From: Macrostomum lignano
Taxonomy: Eukaryota
Length of the DNA stretch: 64,000 bases
Reading direction: 5' to 3'
NCBI GenBank assembly: GCA_002269645.1
Contig: NIVC01001322.1
Location: 62,001-126,000, forward strand
In this document: in pieces, positions 1-45,500 of the stretch
Numbering within the stretch: position 1 is the stretch's first letter
How the letters are laid out: each line of letters begins with the position of its first letter
Made by a program: the position numbers and the translations under genes
Notes under the pieces: generated by a model
Database searches by the model: none
What the model saw: only the letters and a program-made list of their open reading frames with translations
What the model was told of the DNA's origin: nothing

Positions 1-194
1 AGAGGTGAGATAAAGGAATTTTAGGAGAGTGTTTGGCATGAGGCCAAGAAGGAAAGACTATAGAATAAGCTCTTAGTACGAGCTAGAAGATATAAGGAGG
101 AATATCGAATACAGATGATAAACAATGAGAGTATTGGCGCTAATGAAGACTACCAAAATGTTTCAAATCAACGATAAAGCATCGGCAGCGCTAT

Positions 195-3100
195 TCAACT
201 CTCAATTACCTTCGAAGAGGCCTCGTAGTTGGCCAACGAGCTGCTGGTGGGGCACCGGTGGCCGTACACAGCAACACCATCCTCAGCCGGATCTACTTTG
301 CGCGTCATCCAGTCAGTGCCAGTCCCGTGCCGGTTCCGCTCGGCGTATTCAGCGCCTTCGCCTCTAGTCCGCGAGGACGGGCGCGTTGAAGGCGCCGTAG
401 TCGGTCGGGCGTCGTGTCGGTACCAGTCGGCCTGGGAGCGCATCGACCTGGCGATCTCGCGTCCAGCCTCGGACGTGCACTTTGGCCCGGGCGCCGCCTG
501 CGGGTCCGGCTTCTTGTTGTGATCGAACCAGTCGCCCTCGCGAGCCTGGTTGGCACGCTGCATCAGCTCCACATTAGACGGTGGATAAACTTTAACTGGA
601 CGCGGCTTCGGCCTGAACGCGTAATTGCCGTGGAAGTCGAACCACTTGTCCTCCTGGTTGTTGAACTTGTCGGCGATGCGTCTGGCGTCCTCGTCGCGCA
701 GTCGAACTGGCGCCGGCGCGTCGTCCGGCGGCAGGCGGTAGTTGTGGAACACCTCGCCGACTGTCGGCTTGTTTCTGATGGTAAGAAGCAATGCTATGTA
801 GCTAAATAATTTTGACTATAAGCAGCGATCTAGAGCCAGATAGCAGCTTCCAATTTACACATTTTACTGAATTTACCGCAACTTCGGTTTGATTAAACCG
901 AGTTTTGTTAATTTGGCTTTATCCGACAAAAATATGCAATACGTATCTAACTGTGGTCACCCAGCTGACATCGTCCTAGCACCAGTTGCGAGGCAATTCT
1001 GCTCATTCCGCCGACTCCTGAGCATATTAAACGCGACAATGCAGTTATGCAGGCACGCACTCATACATGCTCACACATACTCATACACAATCTCACGCAT
1101 ACTCATACACAATCTCATGCATACTCATACACAATCTCACGCATACTCATACACAATCTCACGCATACTCATACACAATCTCACGCATACTCATACACAA
1201 TCTCACGCATACTCATACACAATCTCACGCATACTCATACACAATCTCACGCATACTCATACACAATCTCACACATACTCATACACAATCTCACGCATAC
1301 TCATACACAATCTCACACATACTCATACACAATCTCACGCATACTCATACACAATCTCACGCATACTCATACACAATCTCACGCATACTCATACACAATC
1401 TCACGCATACTCATACACAATCTCACGCATACTCATACACAATCTCACGCATACTCATACACAATCTCACGCATACTCATACACAATCTCACGCATACTC
1501 ATACACAATCTCACGCATACTCATACACAGTCTCACGCATACTCATACACAATCTCACGCATACTCATACACAATCTCACGCATACTCATACACAATCTC
1601 ACACATACTCATACACAATCTCACGCATACTCATACACAATCTCACGCATACTCATACACAATCTCACGCATACTCATACACAATCTCACGCATACTCAT
1701 ACACAATCTCACGCATACTCATACACAATCTCACGCATACTCATACACAATCTCACGCATACTCATACACAATCTCACGCATACTCATACACAATCTCAC
1801 GCATACTCATACACAATCTCACGCATACTCATACACAATCTCACGCATACTCATACACAATCTCACGCATACTCATACACAATCTCACGCATACTCATAC
1901 ACAATCTCACGCATACTCATACACAATCTCACGCATACTCATACACAATCTCACGCATACTCATACACAATCTCACGCATACTCATACACAATCTCACGC
2001 ATACTCATACACAATCTCACGCATACTCATACACAATCTCACGCATACTCATACACAATCTCACGCATACTCATACACAATCTCACGCATACTCATACAC
2101 AATCTCACGCATACTCATACACAATCTCACGCATACTCATACACAATCTCACGCATACTCATACACAATCTCACGCATACTCATACACAATCTCACGCAT
2201 ACTCATACACAATCTCACGCATACTCATACACAATCTCACGCATACTCATACACAATCTCACGCATACTCATACACAATCTCACGCATACTCATACACAA
2301 TCTCACGCATACTCATACACAATCTCACGCATACTCATACACAATCTCACGCATACTCATACACAATCTCACGCATACTCATACACAATCTCACGCATAC
2401 TCATACACAATCTCACGCATACTCATACACAATCTCACGCATACTCATACACAATCTCACGCATACTCATACACAATCTCACGCATACTCATACACAATC
2501 TCACGCATACTCATACACAATCTCACGCATACTCATACACAATCTCACGCATACTCATACACAATCTCACGCATACTCATACACAATCTCACGCATACTC
2601 ATACACAATCTCACGCATACTCATACACAATCTCACGCATACTCATACACAATCTCACGCATACTCATACACAATCTCACGCATACTCATACACAATCTC
2701 ACGCATACTCATACACAATCTCACGCATACTCATACACACGCATCTCACGCATACTCATACACAATCTCACGCATACTCATACATGCATACTCATACACA
2801 ATCTCACGCATACTCATACACAATCTCACGCATACTCATACACAATCTTACGCATACTCATACACAGCATACTCATACACAATCTCACGCATACTCATAC
2901 ACAATCTCACGCATACTCATACACAATCTCACGCATCTCACGCATACTCATACACAATCTCACGCATACTCATACACAATCTCACGCATACTCATACACA
3001 ATCTCACGCATACTCATACACAATCTCACACATACTCATACACAATCTCACGCATACTCATACACAATCTCACGCATACTCATACACAATCTCACGCATA

Positions 3101-3529
3101 CTCACGCAGGGTGTACAGCAGCCCTGACTTTCTAATCATCAGGCATGTACACTCTCTGTGTCTTCGGGGTTGACCCGTCGTGAGTTAAAAACGCAGACAA
3201 CCTCTCAGCCAATTGTTTGGCGCTCACAAGCCACAAATGAATGCGGCCGCGCGCGGAATCGAACCAGGGATCGCGGCGTGAGAGACACGCCACTCCAACA
3301 TTCCATGAGTCAAATGGTTATATAAATCAGCTACCCGATGAGATATTTAGCCGAGAAAAAATATTTTAAAAACGCACTTTTGAGCAATCTCCTGAGCCTC
3401 GGGCCGAACCCGCGGCGCTGGCTGCGGCTCTCGATAATCGGCCTTGTGCTGAAACCATTGGCCCGGATTGCCGCGATTCTTCAAATAGTTGCTCTGCGCC
3501 TGGTCCTTAGACGATTCCACTAGCGCCAT
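195..3529 (-). CDS. Uncharacterised ~243-aa repeat protein ('gene A'), 2 exons: 3529-3378 and 774-195
   Basis: ATG at 3529 (MALVESSKDQ...). Donor GTGCGT at 3377 and acceptor CATCAG at 780-775 join in phase 2 (AA|A) to give ...EAQEIAQK-NKPTVGEVFHNY... Stop at 197-195. Internal ~35-aa repeats (PQPAPRVRPEAQEIA, PAPVRLRDEDARRIA, PGPKCTSEAGREIA) with W-F/Y-x-H motifs. GC-rich exons. Confidence 0.8.
935..3318 (-). mobile_element. tRNA-derived SINE (type C) split by an internal 2-kb minisatellite
   Basis: Minus strand 3318-3240 reads as a tRNA-Glu-like head (CTCTCACGCCGCG...GGTTCGATTCC, B box). 3150-3105 reads GTGTACATGCCTGATGATTAGAAAGTCAGGGCTGCTGTACACC, like the core of the SINE at 7500. Below the array, 1025-985 reads GCTCAGGAGTCGGCGGAATGAGCAGAATTGCCTC, like the 3' part of that SINE. 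Confidence 0.65.
1075..3105. repeat. 22-bp minisatellite (ATACTCATACACAATCTCACGC)n, ~90 copies, in the intron of gene A
   Basis: Directly visible, near-perfect array. It produces the 22-aa periodic ORFs in all three + frames. Confidence 0.98.
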
Positions 3530-3862
3530 GCTAATGTGACTATTGATTAACCTTACCTTTAGTATTGAACTATAATAATACCAGATCACAACTCGAATAC
3601 ACGGCAAGTAAGCAGGCACAGTTTGCTGCTCTATCTATTGTACTCGCAGCTCTGAATTCCAACTAGACTTAGGAGGCGGGGAGAGGGCTGAGAGGAGGGG
3701 CAAAGCAAATGAATGGAGCGACAGTGAGTCAGTGCAGCTCTCACGAACACACCTGGCTGCTCAGTGACAACCCCGCTCGTAGAGCTCTCCACCATCCCTT
3801 TCTCTCTCTCTCTCTCCCGCTTACCGTCACAGTCTTACTACCCCAAAAAGGGTAGAAAGGTG

Positions 3863-3876
3863 GTCCCCCTAGCAAC
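3863..3876. promoter_or_regulatory. RFX X-box-like motif GTCCCCCTAGCAAC in the shared divergent promoter
   Basis: Close to the RFX consensus GTNRCC(N0-3)RGYAAC. Sits near the middle of the 746-bp region between the two start codons (3529 and 4276). Confidence 0.45.
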
Positions 3877-4275
3877 ATGGGGTTGGCTACAGATAGGGCG
3901 ACAGTACGCAGCCTCTTTCTATAATGTCTGTCTCTCTTTCTGTGCTCACGCGCATGCAATCTCTCTCTCCCTCTATTCCAGCAGTGCGCTAAGGCAAAAG
4001 CAGCAAAGGGGTGGCCGCATAACACCGGTAGGCAATAAGACTTAAATGAGGCACTGCAGTCAGTGTACGTACGTTTTGCTGCTGAGCGATCGAGGCTGCT
4101 CCAAGGGTGTGTATTTCCTGCCGCTGTCAAGAAAGCCGGAACGGTAGACCCGAAAGCCGCAGAGCTCTCTTTTCGCAGTTTATTTAGTCAAACAAATAAG
4201 AAAGGCTACAAAGAAGCGGAGAACTTATTTGGAATTTGAACGGCTTTGGACTCCAAAGCCGCAGCAGATAGTCAT

Positions 4276-6460
4276 ATGGCTTCAATCAGCAGAACAAACG
4301 GCAATCAAAACGGCCTTGGCGTCTATGGAAGGACCATGAAAACCTCAGTAGACTTTGCCGAAGATTACTATCAGCCGGACAAATACGGTTTCAAGCTGCA
4401 CGGAGCCCCTGAAAGCAACGGTTTTGGCGCTACAACCGAGCCAAAGAAGCGCAGCAAGCCCATTAAAGTGCACAGCCCGAAGGTTCGCACCGGCTGGGAC
4501 AAGGCAGCCGTTGTGGCAAACGGTGAACGCTCGCGCAGCAGCGCCGTGAAAGCGAACTTCGACTACAGGCCAGAGAATGCCGAACGCACCGAGAAGCAGC
4601 AGCCAAGGGGCAGCGCCATCGACGGCAGGTTCGCCGAAATCCAGCGCAAGCAGACGCACACTGAGATGGACAAAGTACTCAATCCGAGCAAGGAGCGCTT
4701 CTACCAGCCAGAGATGAATCCCAAGTGTCCGACCGAGGACAGCAAGGAGTTCTACAGGCGCAACCAGAGAGGCACGTACGGATTCATGGAGCCGCCCAGG
4801 GCCAACTACCCCACGGACGAACCCGGCAAGGTGCGCTGTCCATCCGCAGCGGCCCGGGAGAATCTGGAGAAGGGCCGCGGAATGGCTGGCCGGCTCATTC
4901 ACCAAGAGGAGCGGTCGCGCACACCGCCGCCCAGCCTTCGCCTCGGCGCGTCGCAGGAGAGCCGCGAGAACTACGACCGATCGCGCGGCGGCTGCATGTC
5001 GGCCGTGTTCAACCAGTCGGAGAACATTCGGGCCGGTGCGCAGGACCCGGCCCCGGCCGGTCGCGTGATCAAAGGCGAAGCGGCCGAGCAGAACGCGTCT
5101 AGGAATCGCGGCCAAACTGCGCAGCTGTTTGCGCCCGGTCGCGGCGCTCAGCCGGATCCGCAGCCGGCGCCGCGCGTGCGGCCTGAGGCGCAGGAGACGG
5201 CGGCCAGAGAGGGCGCCGGGATGCGGGGCACCTTCTACGGCGGGCCGCAGACGGAGCCGCAGCCGGCGCCGAGGGTTCGGCTGGGCGGTGGCGAGGTGGC
5301 CAGCAAGCTGCAGGGTACACTGACTAGCGAGCAGTACAACTATCGGCAGATGCCTCCCGATCCGCCACCTGCACCGAAAGTGCGACCTGAGGCTCAGGTA
5401 TGTCTCTCTTTGAGGTGGTGTGAATTAAAAGACGCATTAAACCATACCTATATAGGTACGTGCACTTTTCGGAAGTGAGGCTTTGGTAGAAATTTCAGTT
5501 CCCTAGCAACATATTAGACGGGCCAAATGCAAATTCTCAAATGGGCCTGCTGAGATGTTAATGCTCAAATGAGTTGATGTGATGCCAATGCTCAAGTGAG
5601 TTGATTTATGTGATGCCAATGCTCAAGTGAGTTGATCGATGTGATGCCAATGCTCAAGTGAGTTGATTGATGTGATGCCAATGCTCAAGTGAGTTGATCG
5701 ATGTGATGCCAATGCTCAAGTGAGTTGATTGATGTGATGCCAATGCTCAAGTGAGTTGATCGATGTGATGCCAATGCTCAAGTGAGTTGATCGATGTGAT
5801 GCCAATGCTCAAGTGAGTTGATCGTGTGATGCCAATGCTCAAATGAGTTGATGTGATGCCAATGCTCAAGTGAGTTGATTGATGTGATGCCAGTGCTCAA
5901 GTGAGTTGATCGATGTGATGCCAATGCTCAAGTGAGTTGATGTGATGCCAATGCTCAAGTGAGTTGATCGATGTGATGCCAATGCTCAAGTGAGTTGATC
6001 GATGTGATGCCAATGCTCAAGTGAGTTGATCGATGTGATGCCAATGCTCAAATGAGTTGATGTGATGCCAATGCTTAAATGAGGGCTGTTTAGATCGAAA
6101 ATTCGACTGGAAAATGTTCGAGTCAAAAATTTATTTTACATGTAAAAGTATACATCATACAATTGAGTCTATTTAAAGTTTTTGTCTCAAAAGGGTTTAC
6201 GTGCAAATTTTCGCATTCGCAAAGTTTTCATTCCTTTGTCTCACACGCAGGAGTACGCCAACAGGGAGCGAGCGGTGGTGACGAAGAACCTTCTGCAGAA
6301 GTACGGCCAGCTGCCATCGGACTTGCCGCCGAAGCCGCACGTGCCACCGCAGGCGTGGAACACGGCCTATAGATCGAGGGGCAGCGCCATGAAGGACTGC
6401 ATCAATCCAAGCAAGCCGAGGCGAGTCCGGCGGCACAGGAGGCCCGTTTCCGCGCACTGA
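4276..6460 (+). CDS. Uncharacterised ~443-aa repeat protein ('gene B'), paralogue of gene A, 2 exons: 4276-5397 and 6251-6460
   Basis: Long GC-rich ORF. Donor GTATGT at 5398 and acceptor CAG at 6248-6250 join in phase 0 (...PKVRPEAQ|EYANRERA...). TGA at 6458-6460. About ten copies of a P-x-P-(R/K)-(V/C/L)...E-A...N/Y-x-x-R-x-R-G repeat. Confidence 0.85.
5498..5510. promoter_or_regulatory. RFX X-box-like motif GTTCCCTAGCAAC in intron 1 of gene B
   Basis: 13-bp match to the X-box consensus, 100 bp after the donor. Confidence 0.35.
5563..6082. repeat. 27-31-bp minisatellite (TGATGCCAATGCTCAAGTGAGTTGATCGATG)n, ~17 copies, intron of gene B
   Basis: Directly visible tandem array with length variants. 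Confidence 0.95.
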
Positions 6461-6619
6461 GCTGCGTTGGGATTCTAAGAAACGAGCTCCGTTTCTGTTT
6501 TTGGTTAAACACGCGTGCATTGACAGCTAAATGGCTATGACGCTTTTATACTGCTTGCAGCGAGCGTAATAACAGGCAGACATATTAATCATCAAAGTTT
6601 GAATATGTATAACTGATTT

Positions 6620-6790
6620 GAGGGGTTCGAGCCTGGTGGTTGGGGCGTGTAATTGAGGGTGTGTGTGGCAACCCCCCCCCCAGTCCTTGGACTGAACAGC
6701 CGTACGCAGCCTTCAGATGCGCCGCGCAATAGCTGTGGCTGAGCTGTCGGTTGCACATCTGCCTATTAGGGCAGGTGTAATCAATTGTTA
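6620..6790 (+). mobile_element. SINE type A (CORE-like family), deleted copy retaining the 3' part
   Basis: GTAATTGAGGGTGTGTGTGGCAACCCC...CAGTCCTTGGACTGAACAGCCGTACGCAGCCTTCAGATGCGCCGCGC matches 23185-23310. Confidence 0.85.
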
Positions 6791-7499
6791 TATTTATTAC
6801 CAATTAATTTGAACTATTGACACATTTTGTGATCTAATTTATTCCCAAAATGATTAGATTTTCATTCTGGCTGAACGACATCAAGTCGGGACTTTCGGGA
6901 TGCTAAAGGAAATTCGATGTCACTATATTAACTACTGCAAGTATAATATATGCATTCTTTAATAGCATCAGATACGTCAGTAAAAGACCACTTGATATAG
7001 ATTGTTTTTTAATCATTTTAACTAGTTTACAGTTGTTTTTGTGCCTTAGTTTTTTCCTGCTCCGTCCGACCTTTTTAAAAATCCTCTTTACTAAAGAAGG
7101 CTATTTGATTTTATTTAACTACAATTAACAAACTGGGTAACTTATTTTGTCATTTCTCTGTCAGAGTAGGTCTACCAAGGGGCTACGTTGGTTGACACTG
7201 TTTTTTTATGGCTTTAAATCCTTTATTTGCCCCCTCCTGCACTTTTGTCGGAATCAAAACAACTCTGTCATATCCTTAATTGTTTAAATGTTTGCTTGTC
7301 GTGTCAGAAAATATATACATACGAGCTACATGTATGCTAATTTTATGTACACTGTAGCACACCCGTTATTAAATATTTGAACTGAGTGCGTTGACCCGCG
7401 GCAGTTAGGTGACAAAACATAAGCCTTTATTTTCAAGAATATGCGTATATTAGCTGCTAACCGCAACCAAATTGGCTTAATTTTCATGTGCTATGTGAA

Positions 7500-7861
7500 G
7501 GAGGCCGTAGCCCAGCGGTAGCGCAGCTGCTCTGGTGTGCCAGCGACCCAGGCTCGATTCCAAGTGCAGTCACATTAATTTGGGGCTGATTTGGAATCTC
7601 GGCTTGGCTCTGCTCGTGCAATTAGCGGCCTTGAGATCCAACCCCCCAAGGCGCAGTGAAGTGTACATGCCTAACGATAAAAATAAAGTTAGGGCCGTTG
7701 TACACTCCTGTGTGAGTGTTTGCCTGCGTACGTATCCCCGTGCTTGTGTGCCTGCTCAGGGGAGTAGGCGGAATGGGCAGTAATGGTTCTCGCCGGTTGT
7801 GTGCCTATGTCGCTTAAAGTGCGCCAGGATGCACACAACCCCCGTGCCTCTAATAAAAAAA
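7500..7861 (+). mobile_element. tRNA-derived SINE type B, full length, with poly(A) tail and target-site duplication
   Basis: A box TAGCCCAGCGG, B box GCTCGATTCC, A-rich tail. TSD CATGTGCTA(T/G)GTGAA at 7485-7499 and 7862-7876. Highly similar second copy at 38986. Confidence 0.9.
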
Positions 7862-8637
7862 CATGTGCTAGGTGAACTTGCTTGACTTGATAAGAAAGCA
7901 GTTCTTAAAATACAAGCGTTTTAACAGCTTTAGTACCGTCAATTGGATAAAATAGCTGCTTGATTAAGTAGACAAGTATAAATGTATTTAGCTCAGGGTT
8001 GTTGCGGGGTTGTTGCATACCGGTAGAGTGCACATTAGTTTTAACTGCTTTCCCGTTAATCTGTCAGAATAAATCCCCCGAAGGGAATAGCTTTGTTTAA
8101 TTTTAATTTTGGACGACCCCTTCAGAGAAGAAAAAGTTTATTAGGTTTCTTTCGGGAAATTGTAGAGATCGAACAAGCTTACAGAACTCCCTTAGGAATT
8201 TCGATTCCGGAAATTATATCCTGATGCAGTAAACATTTTATCATCACGCTTCTTGTGCAAGTGTACATTTGATATGTATATTTTCTACGCATTTCTGTAA
8301 AGAATTAACAATGAGCAAGACGAAACGACCACTTATTGTCTTAGCAAAGAATTCACAGCAACAACCGTACTCAACTCTTTCTTGCTTCTAAGCCCAGTAA
8401 CATTCAGGCATTAACAGCAATCGATTCTCTTGCATAAGGTTCAGGGTAAGCATGGTTGAGCTAACATAGCCGAGCTTAAGCCAAATATATCGATTCAAAC
8501 GTTTCTGCCATTGAACTCGAAGGGAAACAGCGTGGACGCGCAGAAAACGGCGTATAAAGCTACGCTCTCTACCGGGACTAATCTGCTAGCGCCAACTCCT
8601 AGGTTAAACAGTGCAGATCCTCCAATAGTGTCCGAGA

Positions 8638-9003
8638 ATGTCCACTGGTGAACAAGCGGCCGCGAGCGACGATTCGAAGTCGAAAATCAAACAGCGATTG
8701 GAGCTGGTCAGCTGGATAGCCGTGGCTCTCATCTTGGCTGGACTCGTCGTGGTGGTTGTTGGCTTCGCTGTGCCCACTCACTATGAAGAGCAGGATAACC
8801 TCACTGCCAGACAGAATGAGCGCAATGTTATTTACTATTATCAGCTGAGAAAAAAGATGATCAACTGCGTCATGGCCGGCATCGTGTTGCTGACGCTGGG
8901 TTCAATTGTTCTGTCTTCGGCGCTATCGACCAATTTGGCTTTGCCGTACTGCAACTGCACCGGGACGGCTGCTGCGGACAAAAAACCAGCTGCTGATGGC
9001 TGA
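8638..9003 (+). CDS. TMEM74: TMEM74/neurensin-family two-TM membrane protein (121 aa)
   Basis: Two hydrophobic helices. VVGFAVP...DNLTARQNERNVIYYYQLRKKMINCVMAGIVLLTLGSIVLS aligns by eye with human TMEM74 (AYAIP...[41 protein letters not shown], recalled from memory). Confidence 0.8.
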   Translation: MSTGEQAAASDDSKSKIKQRLELVSWIAVALILAGLVVVVVGFAVPTHYEEQDNLTARQNERNVIYYYQLRKKMINCVMAGIVLLTLGSIVLSSALSTNLALPYCNCTGTAAADKKPAADG

Positions 9004-9267
9004 TGCATACGAAAGACTACTAGACTTGTATGTACTACTAAAGTAAAAGGACGTTATTTATACGGTTGCAGATCGTGCAGCTTGCACACACTCATGAGGG
9101 TCAACCACCAAAGCACAGAGAGCTAGTGTTGATGCCTGACGTGCCAGCCTGCGTACAGTATTGGCGCGCTTGCATGTGCTCAGGAGGTGCTCAGGAGTCA
9201 GCGGTATGGGCAGAATTGCCTCAGCGCTGCTTGTGGGACGATGGCATTACTGTCTATTGCATATTCA

Positions 9268-9470
9268 GCCGACTCCCCTGAGCAGGCACACAAGCTTGCG
9301 GACACGTACACATGAGTGTAAAACGGCCCTAACTTCATTTTATCGTAGGCATGTACACTTTATTGTACTTTGGGGGTTGGCCCTCATGGGTTGTAATAGC
9401 TCGACCAGACCCAAGCCGAGATTCCAATTCAGGCCCAAATTAATTTGACTGCACTTGGAATCGAGCCCTC
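9268..9470 (-). mobile_element. SINE type B, partial copy, inverted
   Basis: Reverse complement matches the B box (GCTCGATTCCAAGTGCAGTCA), core (GTGTACATGCCTA) and CTCAGGGGAGTCGGC segment of the 7500 copy. A type C-like fragment lies just upstream on + (9170-9245). Confidence 0.85.
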
Positions 9471-10019
9471 CTGGAATTTCGATGTCCGGAAGGCTAATGC
9501 GAAACCGGCTTTCATATTGTAGAATAGCGTCCTTCTACTTTAGCTAGTTGTCAAAACACGCGTGTTTTGAAAAATATCTGTCCTGCAGTAGATTAACGAT
9601 GATTCAGACTGGCATTGGCCATTAGTTGTTTTTATTTTCATTTTCATTTCACGTATATTTCATGGTATCAGACATTGACAGCATTAATGTTCAGCTGCAG
9701 TACATAATGCATGTATGCATTACTGAATAATAAATACGGACAATGTACTTTTAATTTCAGTCAAAACTATACGTATTTATTACACCTTATGTAACGTACC
9801 TTTCCTACATAATGTACTGAAAGCCTTTTTTCTTAATATTATATTCTAAATTAAAACTAATTAAGGCTTCGAAACTTTTGAATCACCTTTCCCAATTTTA
9901 ATTGAGTTATTCGACTTTTTAAGCTCAAAAAGATGAGCTTTCTGTGCAGACAAACCTGCTATTTCATTGTGACTGTCATATCCTTCTTACTTTAGAAGAC
10001 AGAACTTTTTATACCAATC

Positions 10020-19000: not shown

Positions 19001-22000
19001 ATCTTCCTCCAGCAATTCATCGTCTTCTTCAATCTGATCTTCAGAATTCATGTCGATTCTTGGTGCGCAACGATTGTACAGTTATGCAGTAAAAACAAAA
19101 ATTAGATTAACTAATTTAACTTAGACGAAAGTTTTGCTACAGCCCAAGATGCAGTGGATGAGCAGAATCCTGCAGGGCGAGAACCAGGGCTGGTTTCGGC
19201 AGATGCTTCGCTTCATCCCGCGCTGCTTAAACGAGGAAGAAATTATCTGAAAATTGATAGGGTTTGATTTCAATCCGTCCAACACTGTTTTGAGAGACAT
19301 GATTGTTGTTATACTGCCATGGTTTTGCTTTTGTCTGTTTTATATTGGTTTCTCTGAAATCAAAGTGTTAACGTCACTCGTTTTTTGATATGCCATCTAT
19401 TTACAGACGTTATTTCAGTGAAGTTTTTCGTGAAGGATATACGAGCACTGCGAAAAGGATTAATTGCGCACCCATATTCTCAAATGGGCTGCTCCATAGA
19501 GCCCCTTTTGGACCATAGACAATTAGAAACAAGTCTTCAATAGATTGATTCTCTCGAAAGGGTTAAATTGCTTGCTCCTAGGCTGAATTAGCTTGGAAAA
19601 TGCTATATTAGTTCATGTATCTATGTGCAAAAATCTCAGTCGAAAAAGAATGTAACTTTGTTTCTTTTGAATTTCAAAGCTGCGCGTGCGCGTCACTCGG
19701 GGACAGTTTTGGCCACAGACAGTCTGAAGTGAACTTCGCTATCTGTTTCAATAGAAATTGACTTTGCTTGAGCTGAATTTCCTCAAGCGCTTTAGAATTT
19801 AGTGTTTGAATTGAAGGTCTGCTTGTTTCTATTAAACAATACTTTGTTCAAAATAGAAGGTAAAATGGTGTACAATTCAATTTGGAGGCTCTATAGTTAG
19901 TCCTCAAATCAAAATTAGGAATCTTTCAAAAGTTCTTTGAAATGTTTTCCACAATGTACTTTTCACTTTTTCAAGCTATGAAATTGCTAGCTTAATGCTC
20001 ATTGAGCGTGTCAACAATGAATTTCAACGAAGTGAAGTACTCATCAGATACATGTACTGCCATTCTCCCCAACAGCTCGCAGACCGACTGCGCCAGGAGG
20101 CCTCCTGGATGCTGGACTCGGCCTACGCCGCTGTCAGCAGAAATCGCAGCGATTCTGGGGCGCGAGTTGGGCCACTTCAGCTGGAGTTGGAACCGGCCAA
20201 GGGTTCATTGTGTAATGTATCGCGCCAATCGACTGGCACGTACCTGACTGCTCTCAAAGTAAGTAGCAGGCATTTAAAATGAAGGTGCGTTTGATGAGTT
20301 GGCTAAATAGCAGTAAAACATTTTGATTTTACACTTTTCAGAACAAGATATCCAAGTCGATCGGTATCGTTAAAGTGCCGGAAGGTCTGGATGTATACAA
20401 CTTCAGTTTTGATGTGTTTCATCTGTACACAACAAAAATGCAAAAGGTATGCAATTAGGCCATGATCAGGATAGGATAGGGATAAGCTAGGAAGTGGCCC
20501 AGGAACTGGGAATCTGGGAGGATGGCGTACTGTGGTCTTTTCGATCCTCCCAGCAACAGGGGATCTGCTGCTTTTTCTCCTCAGTCGTGTACATGTAGTC
20601 CATTCGTGCTATCAACCGTTCTCAGTTCGCCATCTGGACTGCGGATAACGGCTTCATACAAGTGCCCGGTGCCTATGAAAAGCACCTGGAAGAATTCGAT
20701 CAGTACCTGAAGAGGGTCAAACTGACTGTCTTGTCTGTGGAAGACCCGCCGTTTAGCATCTACAACGAAGAGGATCCGGAAGGCCGGCCAATCACTGGGA
20801 ACGATCGGTGGACCGGCTTCGCCGTTGAGCTGTTCAAAGAGATCGCCCGCCGGATGCGGCTGCGCTACTCGATTCGAAAAAGCATTGATGGAAAGTTTGG
20901 CTCCCCAGTTGACGGCACGAACAATCGCGAGTGGAGCGGCATGATCGGCGAGCTGATTAAGGGCACAGCGAACGTGGCAGTGGCTTCGCTAACCATCACC
21001 TACGACAGGGAAAAGGTGCGTCAAAGTCCTAAATAAAGGATATAATTAATGCATTAATGTTTTATTGACTCAAGAAGCTCTTCTGGCCCTGCCCATGTAG
21101 TTTTAGCTTTAGTTACTAATAAAACATCGGGTTTCTTTTTATGAAAGTGCAAAACTGACTATCTATATAATATACGCACCCTGCACATACTTCGCAGCTT
21201 CTCAGTCTCAGTAAACTTACACTCGTATAAAAAGCCTTTAAACCACTCGATGAAGTATAAAAAAATAATCTAGCTAATTAGAAAAGGATAGTTTTGTTTC
21301 CATAGAGGATTTGTCATAGACGATCTTGGCAAAAAAAAGTTGAAGATTTAAAGTTGAAAATTTATCCATTACTTGCCGTTCTCTGGTAGTTTGTGAAAAT
21401 TTCTCGAGAATCTTGGGAATCAATTTAAAACAAAGCATACAATTGGTGCATTTTCGATTCTGAAGTACAGAAAATGTAGTGAAATAGTGTTAACTTTATG
21501 CTAAATAACAAAACTTCGTATTCGCTGTCCCAGAAATTTTTTTAACTATTTTGAGGTCAATAATAATAATAATAACGATAATAATAATAATTGATAACAC
21601 CTGCACCAATTGGGCCAGATTTGCAAGGACTGGGGGTCGCCACACACATCCTCAATTACCTCAGTTAATGCTGGCACCCATTTTACAGCTGGGTGAACTG
21701 AAGCACTGCAGAGTTACGTGTCTTGCTCAAGGACACCAATTGTTCCTGTGAAATCGGGAATCGAACCCCGACCTTCAAGTCGCGAGTCTGACACTTTAAC
21801 CACTAGGCTACAACCCCTGTGCAGTGGACCTGCAATGCAAGACTTATGGACAGGCGGTTTGGGCTCAGGGGGTTGCAGTTTCAAACTTTGTTTACCGGAT
21901 CTGGTCTGTCTCTGTGGTTACCGGATCTGTCTGTCTTTGTGCTAAACTATTTTTAAATACGAGCTACACTATGTAAACAAGTTTAAATTAACAAATTAAC

Positions 22001-28277: not shown

Positions 28278-31200
28278 TTAGTTGTAGCCGCTGTTGTCCG
28301 CGCCGCCAATTCGCGAGCCGTCTCCGTTGTCAAGGCCGCTGGAAAGTATCAGAAGCCAATAAAAGTTTTTTGTCAATTTTGAGTTGGTGCTTTAAGGGGC
28401 TCGCCATGGATTTTATGGTGGGGGGCAAAGCCAAGAACTCTACATGTAAATGACTATACATTATTGCTACATGTACATTATTTTGATAAGCGGTGCTGTT
28501 AGCACGCATTTTGGCGCCGCAGGCAGGCTCTCATTCTGGGGACCGACGGTGGCGACACCCATGTGCGAGTTAGTAAATTCTACTCACGCGGCATTCTCGC
28601 GAGCCTCTCGATCGGCGATCAGCCGGTCAAGCTTCTCCTGGTAGCGCCGGCTGTCTGGCCAGTACTTCTGTACGGCTGGGCCCCATTCGGGCGCCTCGGC
28701 GGCGGCCGCCTGCATGGCCTCTTTGGCGCCGCGGATGCAGCTCTCATAAATGGCAAAGCCAGGGATGAACATAGCAGTGCTGATCATCATGAGCCAGGCC
28801 AGGGCTTCGCCCCAGTCGGTGAAGGGCTCGTCAGCGTAGCTTGAGCGGCCGTATTGAGTGAGTCCAAAGATCAGAATGAACTGCAGAGGGGGGTCGGAAA
28901 TTCTTTTATTCAGGTCTATTTAGCCTATATTTAACTTTGGTTAAGGTAAATTCAATGTTACTAGTGACAAAGTGACAGCACAAGTAACTAGTAGTAAGTG
29001 TTGAAAATTTTTAGTACAATTTTAGTACTTAGATAAATAAAAGCCTGGATTGCGATTGTCTGCCTTATATTTGGGGGTGCAATTTTACTTCGTGAAGCCC
29101 CGTTTGCGGCGATTGACTACTGAATCTTCATTCTTCAGAGCAATCCATGCTTTTTTCATCCATGGTTTTTGTAAAAGTCTTTTACTTACACCCATCATAA
29201 CAGGCGTGACAAACATCCAACAGCCGATCCAATACGGTCCGGGGTAGAAGCCAAGCATCATCTTGATGTCGCGGACGAACTTCTTGATGCCGTAGACGTA
29301 GCAAACTCCGAGTAGTTCGGCAAACGACACCAAGAACAAGTTGTAGTAGGCCGAGTAGTTGTTGAGCAGGGTGAACAGGTACATGCCGCCGGGACAGCAG
29401 ATCGGAATGCCCAGGAGGAACAAGATTACGCACACAACCATTTTAAACAGCGCCTCACGCTTGAACGTCTTCTTTAGCCAGGGCCATTCGTCGGCGAGGG
29501 CGGTGAGCACAGTTTCCATCATTGCGAACTGCGAGTCGAGTCCCAGAGTCAAGATCATGATGAAGAATAGGATGCTCCACAGAGGAGCAACCGGCATGGC
29601 GGCGAGGCCCTCCGGGTAGGCAATAAAAGCCAGGCCGGGACCTTGAGTTGCCACGTCGGCCACTGCCAGACCGGTCTTTTTGGCCATGAAACCGACCACC
29701 GAGAAGATGACAAACCCGGCGAATACAGAGGTGCCGCAGTTGATCACGGCAACCACAAGGGCGTCTCTGTTAATATGGGACAAACGGTTTAGTTTTTTAT
29801 TCTCACTAAAAACGAGTAGAAAAAACGATCTAATAAAGCCTACCTGTAGCAGTTGTTATGGAATCGATTGTAGCTGGCCATTGTCATCAGACCACCAAAA
29901 GCTACTCCCAATGAGTAGAAAATCTGAACAGCAGCGTCTGACCAAACCTGTAGGATTAAAGGATTGAGAATTCGATTTTAGCACTGTCACATCAGCACAA
30001 AGCTAGCCATAGTATAGCTAGGTATTCATATATTTAATTGTTTACCTTGGAGTCAGCGAGACGGTAAAAGTCCGGCTTCAGATAAAAGATAATACCGTCG
30101 AGAGCGCCTTCCAGAGTGGCGCCCCGAACCAGCAGAATGATCAAAACCACGTAGGGGAAGGTGGCTGTAAAATAGACGACCTGGAGATCGAGGACAGCGA
30201 AAGGTTGTACCGGATGTAATTTTTGGTGATTGCCAAATAGGAAACAAATAGTTTGTTACAAATAACAAACTTTTTGTCCCACTGTCTTTTTAATGATTTA
30301 ACTCACTTTGCCCGAAGACTTGATGCCCTTGACAAGGCAGACGTAGACAAGGATCCAGGCAAGCAGCAGGCACAGAGTCACGTGCCACTGCGGCACGCCG
30401 ATAAACTCGGTCATCTTCCTGTCCACGCCGGTGTAGCTGGTGTAGCCCAGCACCACGCGACTAAAAGTATGCAGGATAGGAATTGCTATTGCCCAGTTTT
30501 CGATGTTAAATAATAGAATTGCTTTATGGTCACTCACTCAAAGTATTGTTCGCTCGGTGTTTGGTACTTGGTGCAGTTCACGGTTATCGTTGCGTTGCAT
30601 GGCATAGGATTAGCTGAAATTCGGATGGATTAAAAAATATGAGATGAATAAATGAAAATTAATACATGGAAATTTATCCCTAATTTACATGATGACGTCC
30701 CTGATATCATGGACGCATAATCAGTTCATTTGTATTTGAAAGCCAATGACAAAATCGCAACTTACGGTTGAATCCGGCCTTCAGGTTTCCAGCCACATTG
30801 TGAGTCGCATTGGTGGTGTTCTGCGTCAGGTCGCGGCAGCGCAGATCATTCCATTCGTTGTCGCAGTTGCGCCAGGGCACGGCCGAGTTAAACGAGGCGA
30901 ATAGGTAGTACAGCGACCAGGCAATGATGATGTTATAATAGATGCAGACCAGAGCCGAGATGGACACCATGGCCCAGCCAGTGCCTGGCAGGTTAGGTCG
31001 GTTTCACGGTTCACGGTAAATTATATTTTGTTTATCGCAATTGTGAATTTCTAAGAATTTTTTTAAAAACAGATATTTGCGGGACGAGTTTCCAAACTGA
31101 CACTACCATGCATAATAAAATGTACCCCATCCCATACTCTCATGTAATGTGCCTATTATACTGTTCTAATCTAAGACAGAACTTTTTATAAATTTTGTTT

Positions 31201-31836
31201 TTCCAAGCCCCTGATCCAAGACTAACTTAGCATTAGCTACGAGAGAAGAGAACCCAGGTAACTTTTAATCAGGTGCAATTGCTGGCTACAATGTTAAGTC
31301 CGCATTTTTCTCATTATTAATTCATAGTGCGCTACTAACAGTAGAGATATAAAAAATCTTTTTTTAGATAATACAATAATAATAATAATAACATAGATGA
31401 AATAAAGTAAAAATTGAATTAAATTAAATTCTACTCACCCTTCAAGATAGGACTGGCCCGCCAGATAGTGACCGGCCCCAGATTGGCGAACTGTCCGAAC
31501 GACAGCTCGAAATAGAACAGCGGCAATCCGGCCACAGCCAACATGATGACGTACGGGATGAGGAAGGCGCCGCCTCCATTTGAGTAGCAGAGGTAGGGGA
31601 ATCGCCACACGTTGCCAAGACCGACGGCGAATCCGATAGCAGAGAGGATGAAGTCGAACCGGCCGGTCCAGTTGCCGCGCTCCTTGTTCTCGTCGCCGCC
31701 CTCCTCGCCAGGCATGCCCTCCATGTTAGTCGAGCCCATAGGCTGCATATCCAGGCCGCTGCCGCCTTGGAACTCTTGCTGGAATTCGAGTTTCACCACG
31801 GATTTGTAGTTATCGTGGCAGAATTGCCTTTCAAGT
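28278..31836 (-). CDS. SLC6 Na+/Cl- amino-acid transporter, proline transporter (PROT/SLC6A7)-like, ~642 aa from ATG 31748
   Basis: Phase-consistent exons: 31836(31748)-31439, 30984-30766, 30613-30538, 30460-30307, 30180-30046, 29947-29844, 29766-29190, 28880-28588, 28338-28278. Motifs: [24 protein letters not shown] (Gly rather than Asp, so not a monoamine transporter), [19 protein letters not shown]. Confidence 0.95.
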
Positions 31837-33728
31837 CTGAGAAAAACTTTGTAGCTAAAGTCGCTAGACAAATTTCTTAGAATCAAACGTACTAGTAGAA
31901 CGACAGTAGATTTGATATAGATGATTCTTGCAATGTTTTTGTTAATCTATTACAAGCTCAAAACAATAATTTGGCTACACTCGGATTTCTTATTCCTACA
32001 AGCAAAGAACAAGCAAACCGATAAAGGCATACGTAACTGCATTTATTTTTTCTTTGTGATGCTCATCAAAGACATATGAGCGTACAGCCTCGTCTACGAG
32101 TTTACCGATATTACCTTACAGAGATAAACAGAGAAAACATCCGTAAACTTCAGTTCAGTTCTAACTTACCACCTTGCTCATTGTTCAGACAAGTTTTTGA
32201 GATGTATTGACGACTGCTTGAAATGGCACTGTCGATTGCAGACGAAATTGAGAAGGCCAGTGTATAATTTTTGTTATAAACGCTACTAGACGAAAGCTAC
32301 CGCAAGAGAAAGGCGGAGAGCGGTGGCAAACAAAAAGCGCTCTCTTATAAAAACAGACAGCAGTTGGGGCTCGCCCTGGGTGGGGTGAAGCGTGGGGGGT
32401 TGTTGGTTTATGCAGTTGGGCGAGACAACGCGATGGCCCTGTTGCGACTCCGTCATGGGTGAGGCAGTCACAGTCCATCTCTTTTTCGTCGTGCACGTGA
32501 TTGCGTTTTTGGGTTGAGAGAGAGAGAGAGAGAATTGAGTAACCGCGGTGAAAAACGAAACCCACTGCTTGAAGATGGGCCCATTCCTATTGTCTATCAG
32601 AGCCCCTGCACCTCTCTCCGTGGGTGCAAGCCATTGTGCTCAGAGCGATGAATCTTGGAATCGACCACTCTTGCAGCGTATTGAGAGGGTAATATAGTCT
32701 TCTCAGGGTTTTCTACATGGATTCATAAGTGAAGCATTTCGACCCCTCGGTCCCCTCGCTTTATTCTAGTCAGCTCAGTAATAAGCTTGGCTAGATCTGC
32801 AGAACAGCGTGCAAGTTTTGTACAAAAACGTCCTTTAACGCCCACTTACTGGGGCAGAGAGGGGCTGGAGGCAGCCGAGTTATCAATCCTGCACTGGGCT
32901 ACCCCTAACCCCTGCGGTGCTTTTTGGTATCACGCCAGCTGAGGATGACAAGCAGCTCTCTCTAGCCTTTTCGGCTGACGCAGTGCAAGCTACTCAAATA
33001 TGCATTCTTGAGCATGAGAAGCTCAGCGTTATAAACACAATGACTATGAGGCTTCGCTTGCCTATGCTCCAGCTAGAGCTCTTTCATATTTTTTCCCGCT
33101 GTCCTGAGTATGTCAAGTCGCCATATGAAAAAAAATAAAACTATAGTAGGCAGCCATAAAACTCGGTGTAAGACACAAGAAGCAGCTCCTATTTTTTCTA
33201 TGCTAGTTTATATCCAGCCTCGCTTTCATTGTTTTTAAGAGTGCAGCACACTGTGTGGAAAAAAACGTAGTCTTTCCCCTGCAGCGAGGAAAATTCCATT
33301 TAGACTGTCAAGATTTTAAATGGAGTTTCAGTCTCCAGTTTCTTTTCCATTAGCTAACCTATTTTTGAGCTTGGGCATTTGGTGAGAAATATTTTTTGCT
33401 GTTTGAGTTATTTTTCTCTTGTTTTTTTTCCTGTGTGTATAGATGGCATAGAATAATACCACTGAGAAGGGGCGAGTCTAGTCAGCCAAGATTTTTTAGT
33501 GTTCAAGCGCGTTCATTTTGATCTGAAATGTTTCCAACGAATGCGCGGTTAACCAATGTTCTGAATTTTCAGGGAAAGGACTCATTCATCTGACCTATTT
33601 CAACTTAACCCTAGGGCGTCTAAATTAAAGACCCACTGAGGGGCGATGGAACGGTAGAAGATCCGGAGGGCCTTGACGAGCCGCGGGATGCTCTCGGTTA
33701 TGTTCAGAATCGGGTCTTCTTGTATGAG

Positions 33729-42300: not shown

Positions 42301-42563
42301 TATGACCAAAGTTTAGTGCATAATGTGATGAGTCCTCTTAGTCCTAACTGATTTTTACTATTCATGGGCATTTACACATATTTCATATATCTATGAAAAC
42401 CTTAACTCTAGAGTCTAATATCTGCTATTACTATTAGTAATACGAATGTATTGAAATCAAATTAGGCCAAACAGCCACAACTTTTGCTTCATCAGCAGTT
42501 GACAACTTTCATATTTCTGATTATGATTTCTCTGCTTTCAGTTGCTTCTTTTCATTGCTTGGC

Positions 42564-45500
42564 ATGACAGGCGGCGGAGACCTGCCTGTACACAATGTAC
42601 TTTTAGTAGCTTGCGGCTCATTCAATCCCGTCACTAATATGCACCTGCGCATGTTCGAGTTAGCCAGAGATGCACTGACTCGAACTGGCAGATTTCGAGT
42701 CCTTGGCGGTTTGGTGTCGCCAGTGTCCGATGCTTACTCACAAGTTGCTCAGCTCGAAGGCTTAGCCGCTGTCAATCACAGGTTGGAGATGATTCGTCTG
42801 GCACTGCAGCCGCCTAGCAGGGAGGGCCCGGCCGCCTGGGTCCGATTGGCTCGCTGGGAGGCTGGACTGGCTGATTGGACGCCGACTAGGCGAGTGCTGG
42901 ACCACTATCAGGCTGTTATGGACTGCAGGCCCGTGCAGCAAGGAGCCGAGGTTCAAGCTGGTGCAACTGCTGGCGCCTCTGCTGCCACTGCCGCTGCTGC
43001 GGGAGCTGCTACTGGTGCGTCAGCGGCATGAAACTGCCTGCCAAGTTTTGGGTAGCCGCTGAAGGATTTGGCTGGGTAGCCACTGAAGGATTTGGCTGGG
43101 GTAGCCGCTGAAGGATTTGGCTGGGGTAGCCGCTGAAGGATTTGGCTGGGGTGGTCACTGAAGGATTTGGCTGGGGTGGTCACTGAAGGATTTGGCTAGG
43201 GTAGCCGCTGAAGGATTTGGCTGGGGTGGTCACTGAAGGATTTGGCTGGGGTGGTCACTGAAGGATTTGGCTGGGGTGGTCACTGAAGGATTTGGCTGGG
43301 GTGGTCACTGAAGGATTTGGCTGGAGTGGTCACTAAAGGATTTGGCTGGGGTGGTCACTGAAGGATTTGGCTGGGGTGGTCACTAAAGGATTTGGCTGGG
43401 GTGGTCACTGAAGGATTTGGCTGGGGTGGTCACTAAAGGATTTGGCTGGGGTGGTCACTAAAGGATTTGGCTGGGGTGGTCACTGAAGGATTTGGCTGGG
43501 GTGGTCACTAAAGGATTTGGCTGGGGTGGTCACTAAAGGATTTGGCTGGGGTGGTCACTGAAGGATTTGGCTGGAGTGGTCACTGAAGATCTGACTGGGG
43601 TGGTCACTGAAGATCTGACTGGGGTGGTCACTGAAGGATTTGGCTGGGGTGGTCACTAAAGGATTTGGCTGGGGTGGTCACTGAAGGATTTGGCTGGGGT
43701 GGTCACTAAAGGATTTGGCTGGGGTGGTCACTAAAGGATTTGGCTGGGGTGGTCACTAAAGGATTTGGCTGGGGTGGTCACTAAAGGATTTGGCTGGGGT
43801 GGTCACTGAAGGATTTGGCTGGAGTGGTCACTGAAGATCTGACTGGGGTGGTCACTGAAGATCTGACTGGGGTGGTCACTGAAGATCTGACTGGGGTGGT
43901 CACTAAAGGATTTGGCTGGGGTAGACACTGAAGTATCAGGGGGGGGGGCAGCAGGCACTGAAGCATCAGGGGAGGGGCAGCAGCAGGCACTGAAGCATCA
44001 GGACAGATGCAGCAGGCACTGAAGCATCAGGGGAGGGGCAGCAGCAGGCACTGAAGCATCAGGACAGATGCAGCAGGCACTGAAGCATCAGGGGAGGGGC
44101 AGCAGCAGGCACTGAAGCATCAGGACAGATGCAGCAGGCACTGAAGCATCAGGGGAGGGGCAGCAGCAGGCACTGAAGCATCAGGGGAGGGGCAGCAGCA
44201 GGCACTGAAGCATCAGGGGAGGGGCAGCAGCAGGCACTGAAGCATCAGGGGAGGGGCAGCAGCAGGCACTGAAGCAACAGGGGAGGGGCAGCAGCAGGCA
44301 CTGAAGCATCAGGGGAGGGGCAGCAGCAGGCACTGAAGCATCAGGGGAGGGGCAGCAGCAGGCACTGAAGCATCAGGGGAGGGGCAGCAGCAGGCACTGA
44401 AGCATCAGGGGAGGGGCAGCAGCAGGCACTGAAGCATCAGGGGAGGGGCAGCAGCAGGCACTGAAGCATCAGGGGAGGGGCAGCAGCAGGCACTGAAGCA
44501 TCAGGGGAGGGGCAGCAGCAGGCACTGAAGCATCAGGGGAGGGGCAGCAGCAGGCACTGAAGCATCAGGGGAGGGGCAGCAGCAGGCACTGAAGCATCAG
44601 GGGAGGGGCAGCAGCAGGCACTGAAGCATCAGGGGAGGGGCAGCAGCAGGCACTGAAGCATCAGGGGAGGGGCAGCAGCAGGCACTGAAGCATCAGGGGA
44701 GGGGCAGCAGCAGGCACTGAAGCATCAGGGGAGGGGCAGCAGCAGGCACTGAAGCATCAGGGGAGGGGCAGCAGCAGGCACTGAAGCATCAGGGGAGGGG
44801 CAGCAGCAGGCACTGAAGCATCAGGGCAGATGCAGCAGGCACTGAAGCATCAGGGCAGATGCAGCAGGCACTGAAGCATCAGGGCAGATGCAGCAGGCAC
44901 TGAAGATTCCATAAGTTCACAGCACGTGGCAATTTTTCTGCTTTGAACAGACCCAGATGACTATCGCTGGCTTACTGGGCTGCTTCGCCGGCTTCGACTG
45001 AAAGACCCGCTGACCGTGGCACACCCTATGCTACTGTGCGGCTCCGATATGCTTAAATCGTTCGCCGTGCCAGGACTATGGACTAATGACGACGTGAGGT
45101 CTTGAGTATATAATAAAGTAAATATTAGGTGTCAGAAAAAACTGGAAATGGTTTTCATAGTTCAGGCCTTTTTAATAGTAAGGAGGGCTATGGGCTATGG
45201 GAGGGATATCCTCATCAACAACATGTTTTAATTAATTATTCTGCAAAATTATTTCCAGCTGGTAAAAATACTTCGCGACTACGGTCTGATTGTAATCACT
45301 AAGCCCAGCTGTAATCCGCAACAGATCATCTTTGAAAATGATCTGCTCAACACCTACGAGGTTTGTAGAATTATAATTATTATAATTATTCAGATGGGAA
45401 ATTCGTATTGTAGCTGATATGTTTGTCAACGTATTGCAGCAAAACATCGCCCTAGTAACTGAGTGGACAGTGAACGAACTTAGTTCCGCTTTCGTTCGTC

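Follow-up and report, generated by a model that had tools for sequence, protein, structure and literature searches.

The 64-kb stretch of DNA analysed here (the window) lies on contig NIVC01001322.1 of Macrostomum lignano (Platyhelminthes, assembly GCA_002269645.1). It carries two spliced genes, gene A (Mlig007728g1, cut by the window edge) and gene B (Mlig032595g1, entirely within the window), which diverge from a spacer of 746 bp and encode proteins built from a unit of about 36 residues. Profile comparisons indicated that this unit is homologous to an N-terminal motif of ENKD1. The presence of the motif in front of the ENKD1 Enkurin domain is newly seen here. Because the motif lies in the half of ENKD1 that binds and bundles microtubules, multivalent binding along the microtubule lattice would be the most likely function of the two proteins, and we give it an even chance of being right.

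Repeat unit and its homology with ENKD1

Repeat profile A1 was made from 24 units and then iterated on the family to give a repeat hidden Markov model (HMM). The iterated profile recognised seven units in gene B and nine in gene A, and its consensus is SPRPAPRVKPEAEENAEKNRGGMMSVLLH. The core pattern is PRVKPEAxExAxKNKG followed by GxMxxL or WFxH. The window has no copy of the repeat outside genes A and B.

The profile matches included P0066 (E = 3.9e-16), P0068 and P0073, each with three units followed by a Pfam Enkurin domain (scores of 1e-13 to 1e-22). Seven family matches have an ENKD1-type C-terminus, four of them with Pfam Enkurin at E ≤ 1e-4. P0066 and P0144 matched the ENKD1 chain 11yj_8A (E = 5.8e-36 and 3.6e-46) far better than Enkurin itself, and they are therefore ENKD1 orthologues. 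The ENKD1 orthologues carry 1-3 clear units in their N-terminal half, ahead of the Enkurin domain (for example APRVKPEAAEIARKSRGSMSSLL), at distances of 55-75 residues. P0144 has a single unit, VPRVRPEAEDIATRAQGSVGLLLQLQG, and its alignment to GPCIGPGAGEILERGQRGVGDVLLQLEG of mammalian ENKD1 (residues 56-83) has a high posterior probability.

The link was also found in the opposite direction. A profile made from the 20 ENKD1-type copies only scored 83.8 bits on gene A and 60.2 bits on gene B, against 5.8 bits for the best of 1000 composition-matched shuffles. The iterated repeat HMM scored 12.7 bits on ENKD1 residues 52-79 (P = 4e-6, single test). Mammalian ENKD1 has kept one degenerate copy of the motif, at about residues 52-83.

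ENKD1 and proteins A and B have the motif P-R-V-K/R-P-E-A-x-x-I-A-x-K-x-x-G-x-M/V-x-x-L in common, and the ENKD1 region that holds it is basic and predicted to be disordered. The proteins differ in their remaining parts. No credible Pfam match to the Enkurin domain (PF13864) was found at E ≤ 10 in gene B or in gene A, whether as the 243-amino-acid (aa) window part or as the full 478 aa. The PLKALWRSxKY block of ENKD1 is also lacking: a phmmer search for the central ENKD1 block (ENLRRIxxIQ ... PLKALWRSxKYxxVESRV) with the C-terminal 240 aa of P0066 found seven ENKD1-like proteins, and neither P0001 (gene B) nor P0005 (gene A). The units of A and B follow each other head to tail with 36-residue spacing, 7-9 per protein, whereas those of ENKD1 are interleaved with a GPIxxDPxY element.

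This GPIxxDPxY element is conserved before each PRVKPEA unit of the ENKD1-like proteins P0068, P0073, P0144 and P0153. Human ENKD1 presumably begins ...SGPIPPDP.... The arrangement suggests that element and unit together formed a larger ancestral N-terminal module of ENKD1, of about 70 residues.

Architecture of the unit

The first-pass annotation had described a head-to-head pair of paralogues made of a repeat of about 35 aa, and this description was confirmed with a unit of about 36 aa. The peptide PQPAPRVRPEAQE, which it had reported from both proteins, is indeed common to them. At the DNA level, the coding strand of gene A at 3388-3430 (-) is 37/43 identical to 5155-5197 (+) of gene B, and the same region is 26/28 identical to 5254-5281 (+). 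The iterated repeat HMM placed the units in the window as follows.

4834-4902, 4957-5013, 5044-5130, 5155-5208, 5257-5328, 5359-5398+6251-6295 (split by the intron) and 6326-6406, + strand: the seven repeat units of gene B, with unit E-values of 1.6e-9 to 9e-3
3446-3508, 3378-3427+747-774 (split by intron 1), 447-494 and 318-389, - strand: the four repeat units of gene A in the window

Five further gene A units are in exons outside the window. Across the family (488 unit matches), the unit spacing has its mode at 36 residues and is mostly 32-40. Each unit consists of a Pro/Arg-rich extended stretch (SPRPxPRVK), a helix of about 10 residues (PEAxExAxKN) that ends in Gly, and a hydrophobic/aromatic helix of about 6 residues (xMxxLh). 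Gene A departs from this in its N-terminal half, where WFxH or WYxH replaces MxxLh in the second helix; this variant is the one that the first-pass annotation had described.

Proteins A and B are very basic and hydrophilic, with isoelectric points (pI) of 10.0 and 9.7, net charges of +27 and +20 and a grand average of hydropathy of about -1.15. AlphaFold2 modelled gene B alone as nearly all coil, with helices only at the unit cores (predicted local distance difference test, pLDDT, 47). The model from a two-unit alignment of 60 sequences reached a pLDDT of 76 and showed a helix-Gly-helix in each unit: an extended stretch, the 10-residue helix PEAEEFANRA, Gly, and the 6-residue helix QMSQWF. Both proteins are predicted to be largely disordered with short helices. 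A Foldseek search of the two-unit model against the PDB gave no match. Pfam, run on both proteins and 146 family members, has no family for the repeat; apart from Enkurin in 4 members, it reported a single stray Ig domain.

Distribution of the repeat family

Against 1.84e9 representative proteins, profile A1 found 159 clusters at E ≤ 1e-3, of which 86 reached E ≤ 1e-10, with whole-protein E-values of 2.3e-22 for gene B and 1.6e-50 for gene A. The two genes had been called orphans. This does not hold, as the HMM search of proteomes recovered the repeat widely, as a family across Spiralia. A word-indexed homologue search with profile A3 returned only 16 short fragments.

The family members with a species name are all spiralian (10 species, 4 phyla) and are annotated as uncharacterised; this range rests on the named members, and many more carry no species name. 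The flatworm members are from Macrostomum, Schistosoma mekongi (MN116_005904) and Echinococcus. Molluscs are represented by Biomphalaria (LOC106057157), Littorina, Liolophura, Ylistrum and Argopecten, annelids by Capitella (CAPTEDRAFT_223662) and brachiopods by Lingula (LOC106155656).

Gene A is colinear from end to end with a subfamily of about 480 aa, which includes P0006 (28% identical), Capitella R7V190 and the S. mekongi protein. Gene B groups with a subfamily of about 365 aa, with which it has in common a ...NLLxKYGxLP... penultimate unit and a basic tail and whose members end in ...KKTYK...W. Since A and B fall in two different subfamilies, they are old paralogues and not the product of a recent tandem duplication. 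The spiralian relatives show the same tandem units, but the divergent partner is absent: no head-to-head partner was found within 10 kb at the four orthologous loci examined (one ENA sequence, S. mekongi, Capitella and Littorina).

The PRVKPEA units of P0021 and P0057 (Lingula LOC106155656 and a relative) are flanked by another repeated element, RPxSR(D)ETRxESFxKRNxTT, which shares their R...E...KRN skeleton and is possibly one more variant of the unit.

Proposed function

In human ENKD1, co-pelleting with microtubules and their bundling are seen with fragments 1-150 and 1-250 but not with the Enkurin domain (250-346), and the binding of the recombinant protein to microtubules is direct (bioRxiv 10.1101/2021.07.20.453048). 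ENKD1 was also identified as a lumenal protein of the B-tubule in the bovine transition-zone doublet, with 8-nm periodicity (2026 preprint, bioRxiv 10.64898/2026.06.11.731632). With the repeat homologous to a motif in this microtubule-binding half, the microtubule link that the first-pass annotation had drawn now goes beyond analogy, and it is plausible that A and B are microtubule binders.

We speculate that each unit would fold upon binding one tubulin site, with the helix-Gly-helix lying on the tubulin surface, and that the Pro/Arg-rich linker would bridge the distance to the next one. At full stretch, the 36 residues of a unit could cover roughly 8-9 nm, and the geometry therefore allows each unit to take up either one tubulin monomer or one dimer. 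With seven to nine units in a row, avidity along a protofilament could be high, and the proteins may then staple, stabilise or bundle stable microtubules. This might take place in cilia and basal bodies or, in flatworm cells, at the cortical microtubules.

A wider proposal, which we make tentatively and hold slightly less likely than not to be correct, is that PRVKPEAxExAxKNKG-GxMxxL is an unrecognised module for binding the tubulin lattice. ENKD1 would carry 1-3 spaced copies of it. In Spiralia it would have expanded into at least two old families of tandem arrays, of which A and B are one member each. Each tubulin repeat of the stable microtubules that these proteins coat or line would then take one unit.

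Binding to microtubules, the register on tubulin and the cellular location are inferred, and several points weigh against binding. Profile A1 alone gave no PDB match to mammalian ENKD1 at E ≤ 10 and an hhalign probability of 1.9%, and therefore the link is transitive, through the intermediate ENKD1 orthologues. Neither ENKD1 paper assigns a tubulin contact to residues 52-83 (10.1101/2021.07.20.453048; 10.64898/2026.06.11.731632). All named members are spiralian, a narrower range than one would expect of a core ciliary component. Other polyanions, such as nucleic acids, can also be bound by basic disordered repeats.

The last point leads to a different explanation, in which A and B are basic disordered repeat proteins unrelated to microtubules. 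They would bind nucleic acid or chromatin, or act as a scaffold for another ENKD1 partner that is served by the common motif. Their composition (R 11%, P 10%, pI 10) is of a kind common among polyanion binders, the motif is not mapped as a tubulin contact in ENKD1, and the N-terminal and central parts of ENKD1 also mediate centrosome targeting and the binding of gamma-tubulin and HDAC6. However, direct microtubule binding is the sole experimentally characterised activity of the motif-bearing ENKD1 region, and the regular 36-residue period with its conserved helix-Gly-helix resembles other lattice-binding repeats. We consider this explanation improbable.

If the unit binds tubulin, it would pinpoint the microtubule-binding element of ENKD1, a protein of centriole, cilium and spindle. 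It would also add a new sequence class beside the lattice-binding repeats of tau/MAP2, Mn/SAXO and SPM1, and open a way to study how stable microtubule arrays are built in spiralian animals. Otherwise, A and B are two more basic repeat proteins without an assigned role. Transgenesis and RNAi exist for Macrostomum, and therefore the prediction is directly testable there.

Comparison with SAXO/MAP6/SPM1 and doublet proteins

In proteins with Mn motifs, short repeats that each include a short helix form a disordered chain running along tubulin (PMC8144581). Proteins A and B resemble SAXO, MAP6, SPM1 and FAP363 in this design principle and in unit length (32 aa in SPM1), but no sequence ancestry with them is detectable. 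The likeness to SAXO/MAP6 pointed out earlier is therefore one of design. Membership in the SAXO/MAP6 (STOP)/SPM1 group was rejected, with no Pfam STOP or SAXO match even at E ≤ 10, and the repeat profiles matched no SPM1, FAP363 or SAXO chain in the PDB (E ≤ 10). The N-terminal cysteine cluster that forms motif 1 of Dacheux 2012 (PMC3280300) is absent from the N-termini of A and B, MALVESSKDQ... and MASISRTNGN.... The Mn-motif positions (T/S at 6 and F/Y at 12 of the 15-mer) were compared with A and B by eye only.

In UniRef, gene A goes under the labels 'Microtubule associated protein SPM2' and 'Microtubule associated protein 6'. No such relation was reproduced, and the SPM2 literature examined gives no sequence features for comparison with gene A.

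These labels bear on the possibility that A and B are not lumenal and instead associate with microtubules from outside or bundle stable arrays other than the axoneme, for example the cortical microtubules of flatworm epidermis, muscle or sperm, or centrioles. The high positive charge favours the acidic outer surface of the microtubule and the tubulin tails. Over-expressed N-terminal fragments of ENKD1 decorate and bundle cytoplasmic microtubules from outside (10.1101/2021.07.20.453048), and a named distribution confined to Spiralia fits a lineage-specific cytoskeletal use. However, the UniRef labels, which would point the same way, found no support in Pfam or in SPM1/SAXO chains of the PDB. 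An external, non-lumenal role is in our view somewhat unlikely.

All PDB chains were compared with P0001, P0005 and profiles A1 and A3. No relevant match was found, including in solved axonemal doublets and cortical microtubules; a spiralian doublet is not among the solved ones. The earlier suggestion that the two proteins are axonemal microtubule inner proteins is thus not supported, as the repeat profile matched none of the chains in the solved doublets. ENKD1 of the transition-zone doublet (11yj) is the only doublet protein reached, and solely through the ENKD1-like intermediates. The identifiers of genes A and B and of their orthologues are not mentioned in the full texts searched, and those of A and B are also not in the supplements of three Macrostomum papers.

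Gene models and locus

The two genes are arranged around the spacer as follows.

1..209, - strand: start of gene A intron 2; contains a TGA at 195-197
210..774, - strand: gene A exon 2; residues 51-239, ending at the donor AAG|GTAATT (210/209)
775..3377, - strand: gene A intron 1; 22-bp tandem array (about 85-92 copies) at 1070-3104
3378..3529, - strand: gene A (Mlig007728g1) exon 1; ATG at 3529, donor GTGCGT at 3377, residues 1-50 plus 2 nt; the spliced translation is the N-terminus of PAA69442 (P0005)
3530..4275, no strand: divergent intergenic region of 746 bp, from ATG to ATG; presumed bidirectional promoter, nearly identical in two other genomic copies
4276..5398, + strand: gene B (Mlig032595g1) exon 1; residues 1-374, 100% identity to P0001
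5399..6250, + strand: gene B intron, GT-AG; 31-bp tandem array (16.8 copies) at 5576-6083
6251..6460, + strand: gene B exon 2; residues 375-443 and the stop codon

Over its whole length, the spliced product of gene B (443 aa) matches GenBank PAA46201/PAA69443 with 100% identity; these are recorded as 'hypothetical protein BOX15_Mlig032595g1'. Exon 1 (3529-3378) and exon 2 (from 774) of gene A reproduce residues 1-239 of PAA69442. The full gene A protein in that record has 478 aa and continues as ...EASSK|GSQMRD... across the junction of exons 2 and 3. Residues 240-478 are encoded by exons 3 and 4, which NIVC01001322.1 carries outside the window, about 100-2030 nt beyond its position 1.

The first-pass models thus held except for the end of gene A, which had been placed at 195. 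This stop was rejected, as the TGA at 195-197 is intronic and lies beyond the splice donor AAG|GTAATT at 210/209. A word-indexed homologue search with the 243-aa gene A that ends at 195 gave no match, because this model is not a real protein.

The GenBank annotation of GCA_002269645.1 was derived from a genome-guided RNA-seq transcriptome (PMC5730564). The splice junctions of both genes and their divergent transcription, as proposed earlier, therefore have RNA support, through the annotation and not through reads.

The assembly contains three near-identical copies of the A/B pair (L002, L003 and L004), and window position n corresponds to L002 position n+5725. The sequenced line is known to have a duplicated karyotype, which the three copies fit. 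The homeologous copy L004 (span 3470-9787) has much shorter versions of both genes (3845 vs 5557 nt and 1787 vs 2185 nt), which may reflect shorter tandem arrays.

The array in gene A intron 1 has the 22-bp unit CTCACGCATACTCATACACAAT. The same intron contains, at about 3243-3300 (-), a tRNA-like string with the T-loop motif GGTTCGATTCC. It was not called as a tRNA by ARAGORN or Rfam, even at E ≤ 1, and is possibly a fragment of a tRNA-derived repeat.

X-box-like strings

The first-pass annotation had read genes A and B as co-regulated microtubule inner proteins of the axonemal doublet, driven by RFX through X-boxes. The two strings that it had singled out do exist.

3863..3876, + strand: X-box-like string GTCCCCCTAGCAAC in the middle of the divergent spacer; right half-site perfect, left half-site with 1 mismatch to GTNRCC
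5498..5510, + strand: X-box-like string GTTCCCTAGCAAC in the gene B intron; mismatch in the left half-site

Their frequency is at or below chance. The strict pattern GTNRCC(N0-3)RGYAAC has no match in the 64-kb window. The relaxed pattern (one mismatch) has 6 matches vs 9.6 expected by chance, and the loose nematode-style pattern GTHNYYNNRRNAAC has 5 vs 4.1 expected. In the homeologous copy L004, a 1-bp insertion adds a C to the promoter string; the promoters of the three genomic copies are about 97-100% identical, so that their comparison is uninformative save for this insertion. No X-box with ≤1 mismatch was found within 3 kb upstream of the orthologues in Capitella, S. mekongi, Littorina and one ENA sequence, a weak negative since the transcription starts of the orthologues are not known.

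An exact 12-mer, CCCTAGCAACAT, occurs at 3867-3878 in the promoter and at 5501-5512 in the gene B intron, overlapping both X-box-like strings. Any 12-mer in common with the gene B intron was found in 2.8% of shuffled promoters, a mildly unusual result that was noticed after the fact. The 12-mer could be a common cis-element or chance.

The 12-mer speaks for RFX-driven axonemal inner proteins, the 746-bp divergent spacer is compatible with co-regulation, and the motif carrier ENKD1 is itself a lumenal protein of the ciliary doublet. Against this stand the X-box counts, the insertion in the homeologue, the orthologue promoters, the solved doublets without a matching chain and the four orthologous loci without a head-to-head layout. 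RFX control of A and B is unsupported, and we regard the combination of RFX control and an axonemal lumenal position as very unlikely. The first-pass annotation was mostly right in what it observed, and its interpretation is partly supported; nothing places A and B specifically in the axoneme.

Other features of the window

Rfam reported a tRNA at 21749-21817 (-) with 31.5 bits against a gathering score of 29 bits; ARAGORN called none in the window. Exons of a sodium:neurotransmitter symporter (SLC6/SNF, PF00209) lie at 29085-29783 (-) (E = 5e-69) and 31431-31886 (-) (E = 2e-38). The exon at 42555-43031 (+) encodes a cytidylyltransferase-like domain (PF01467, E = 4.5e-8), which by eye looks like the N-terminus of a nicotinamide-mononucleotide adenylyltransferase.

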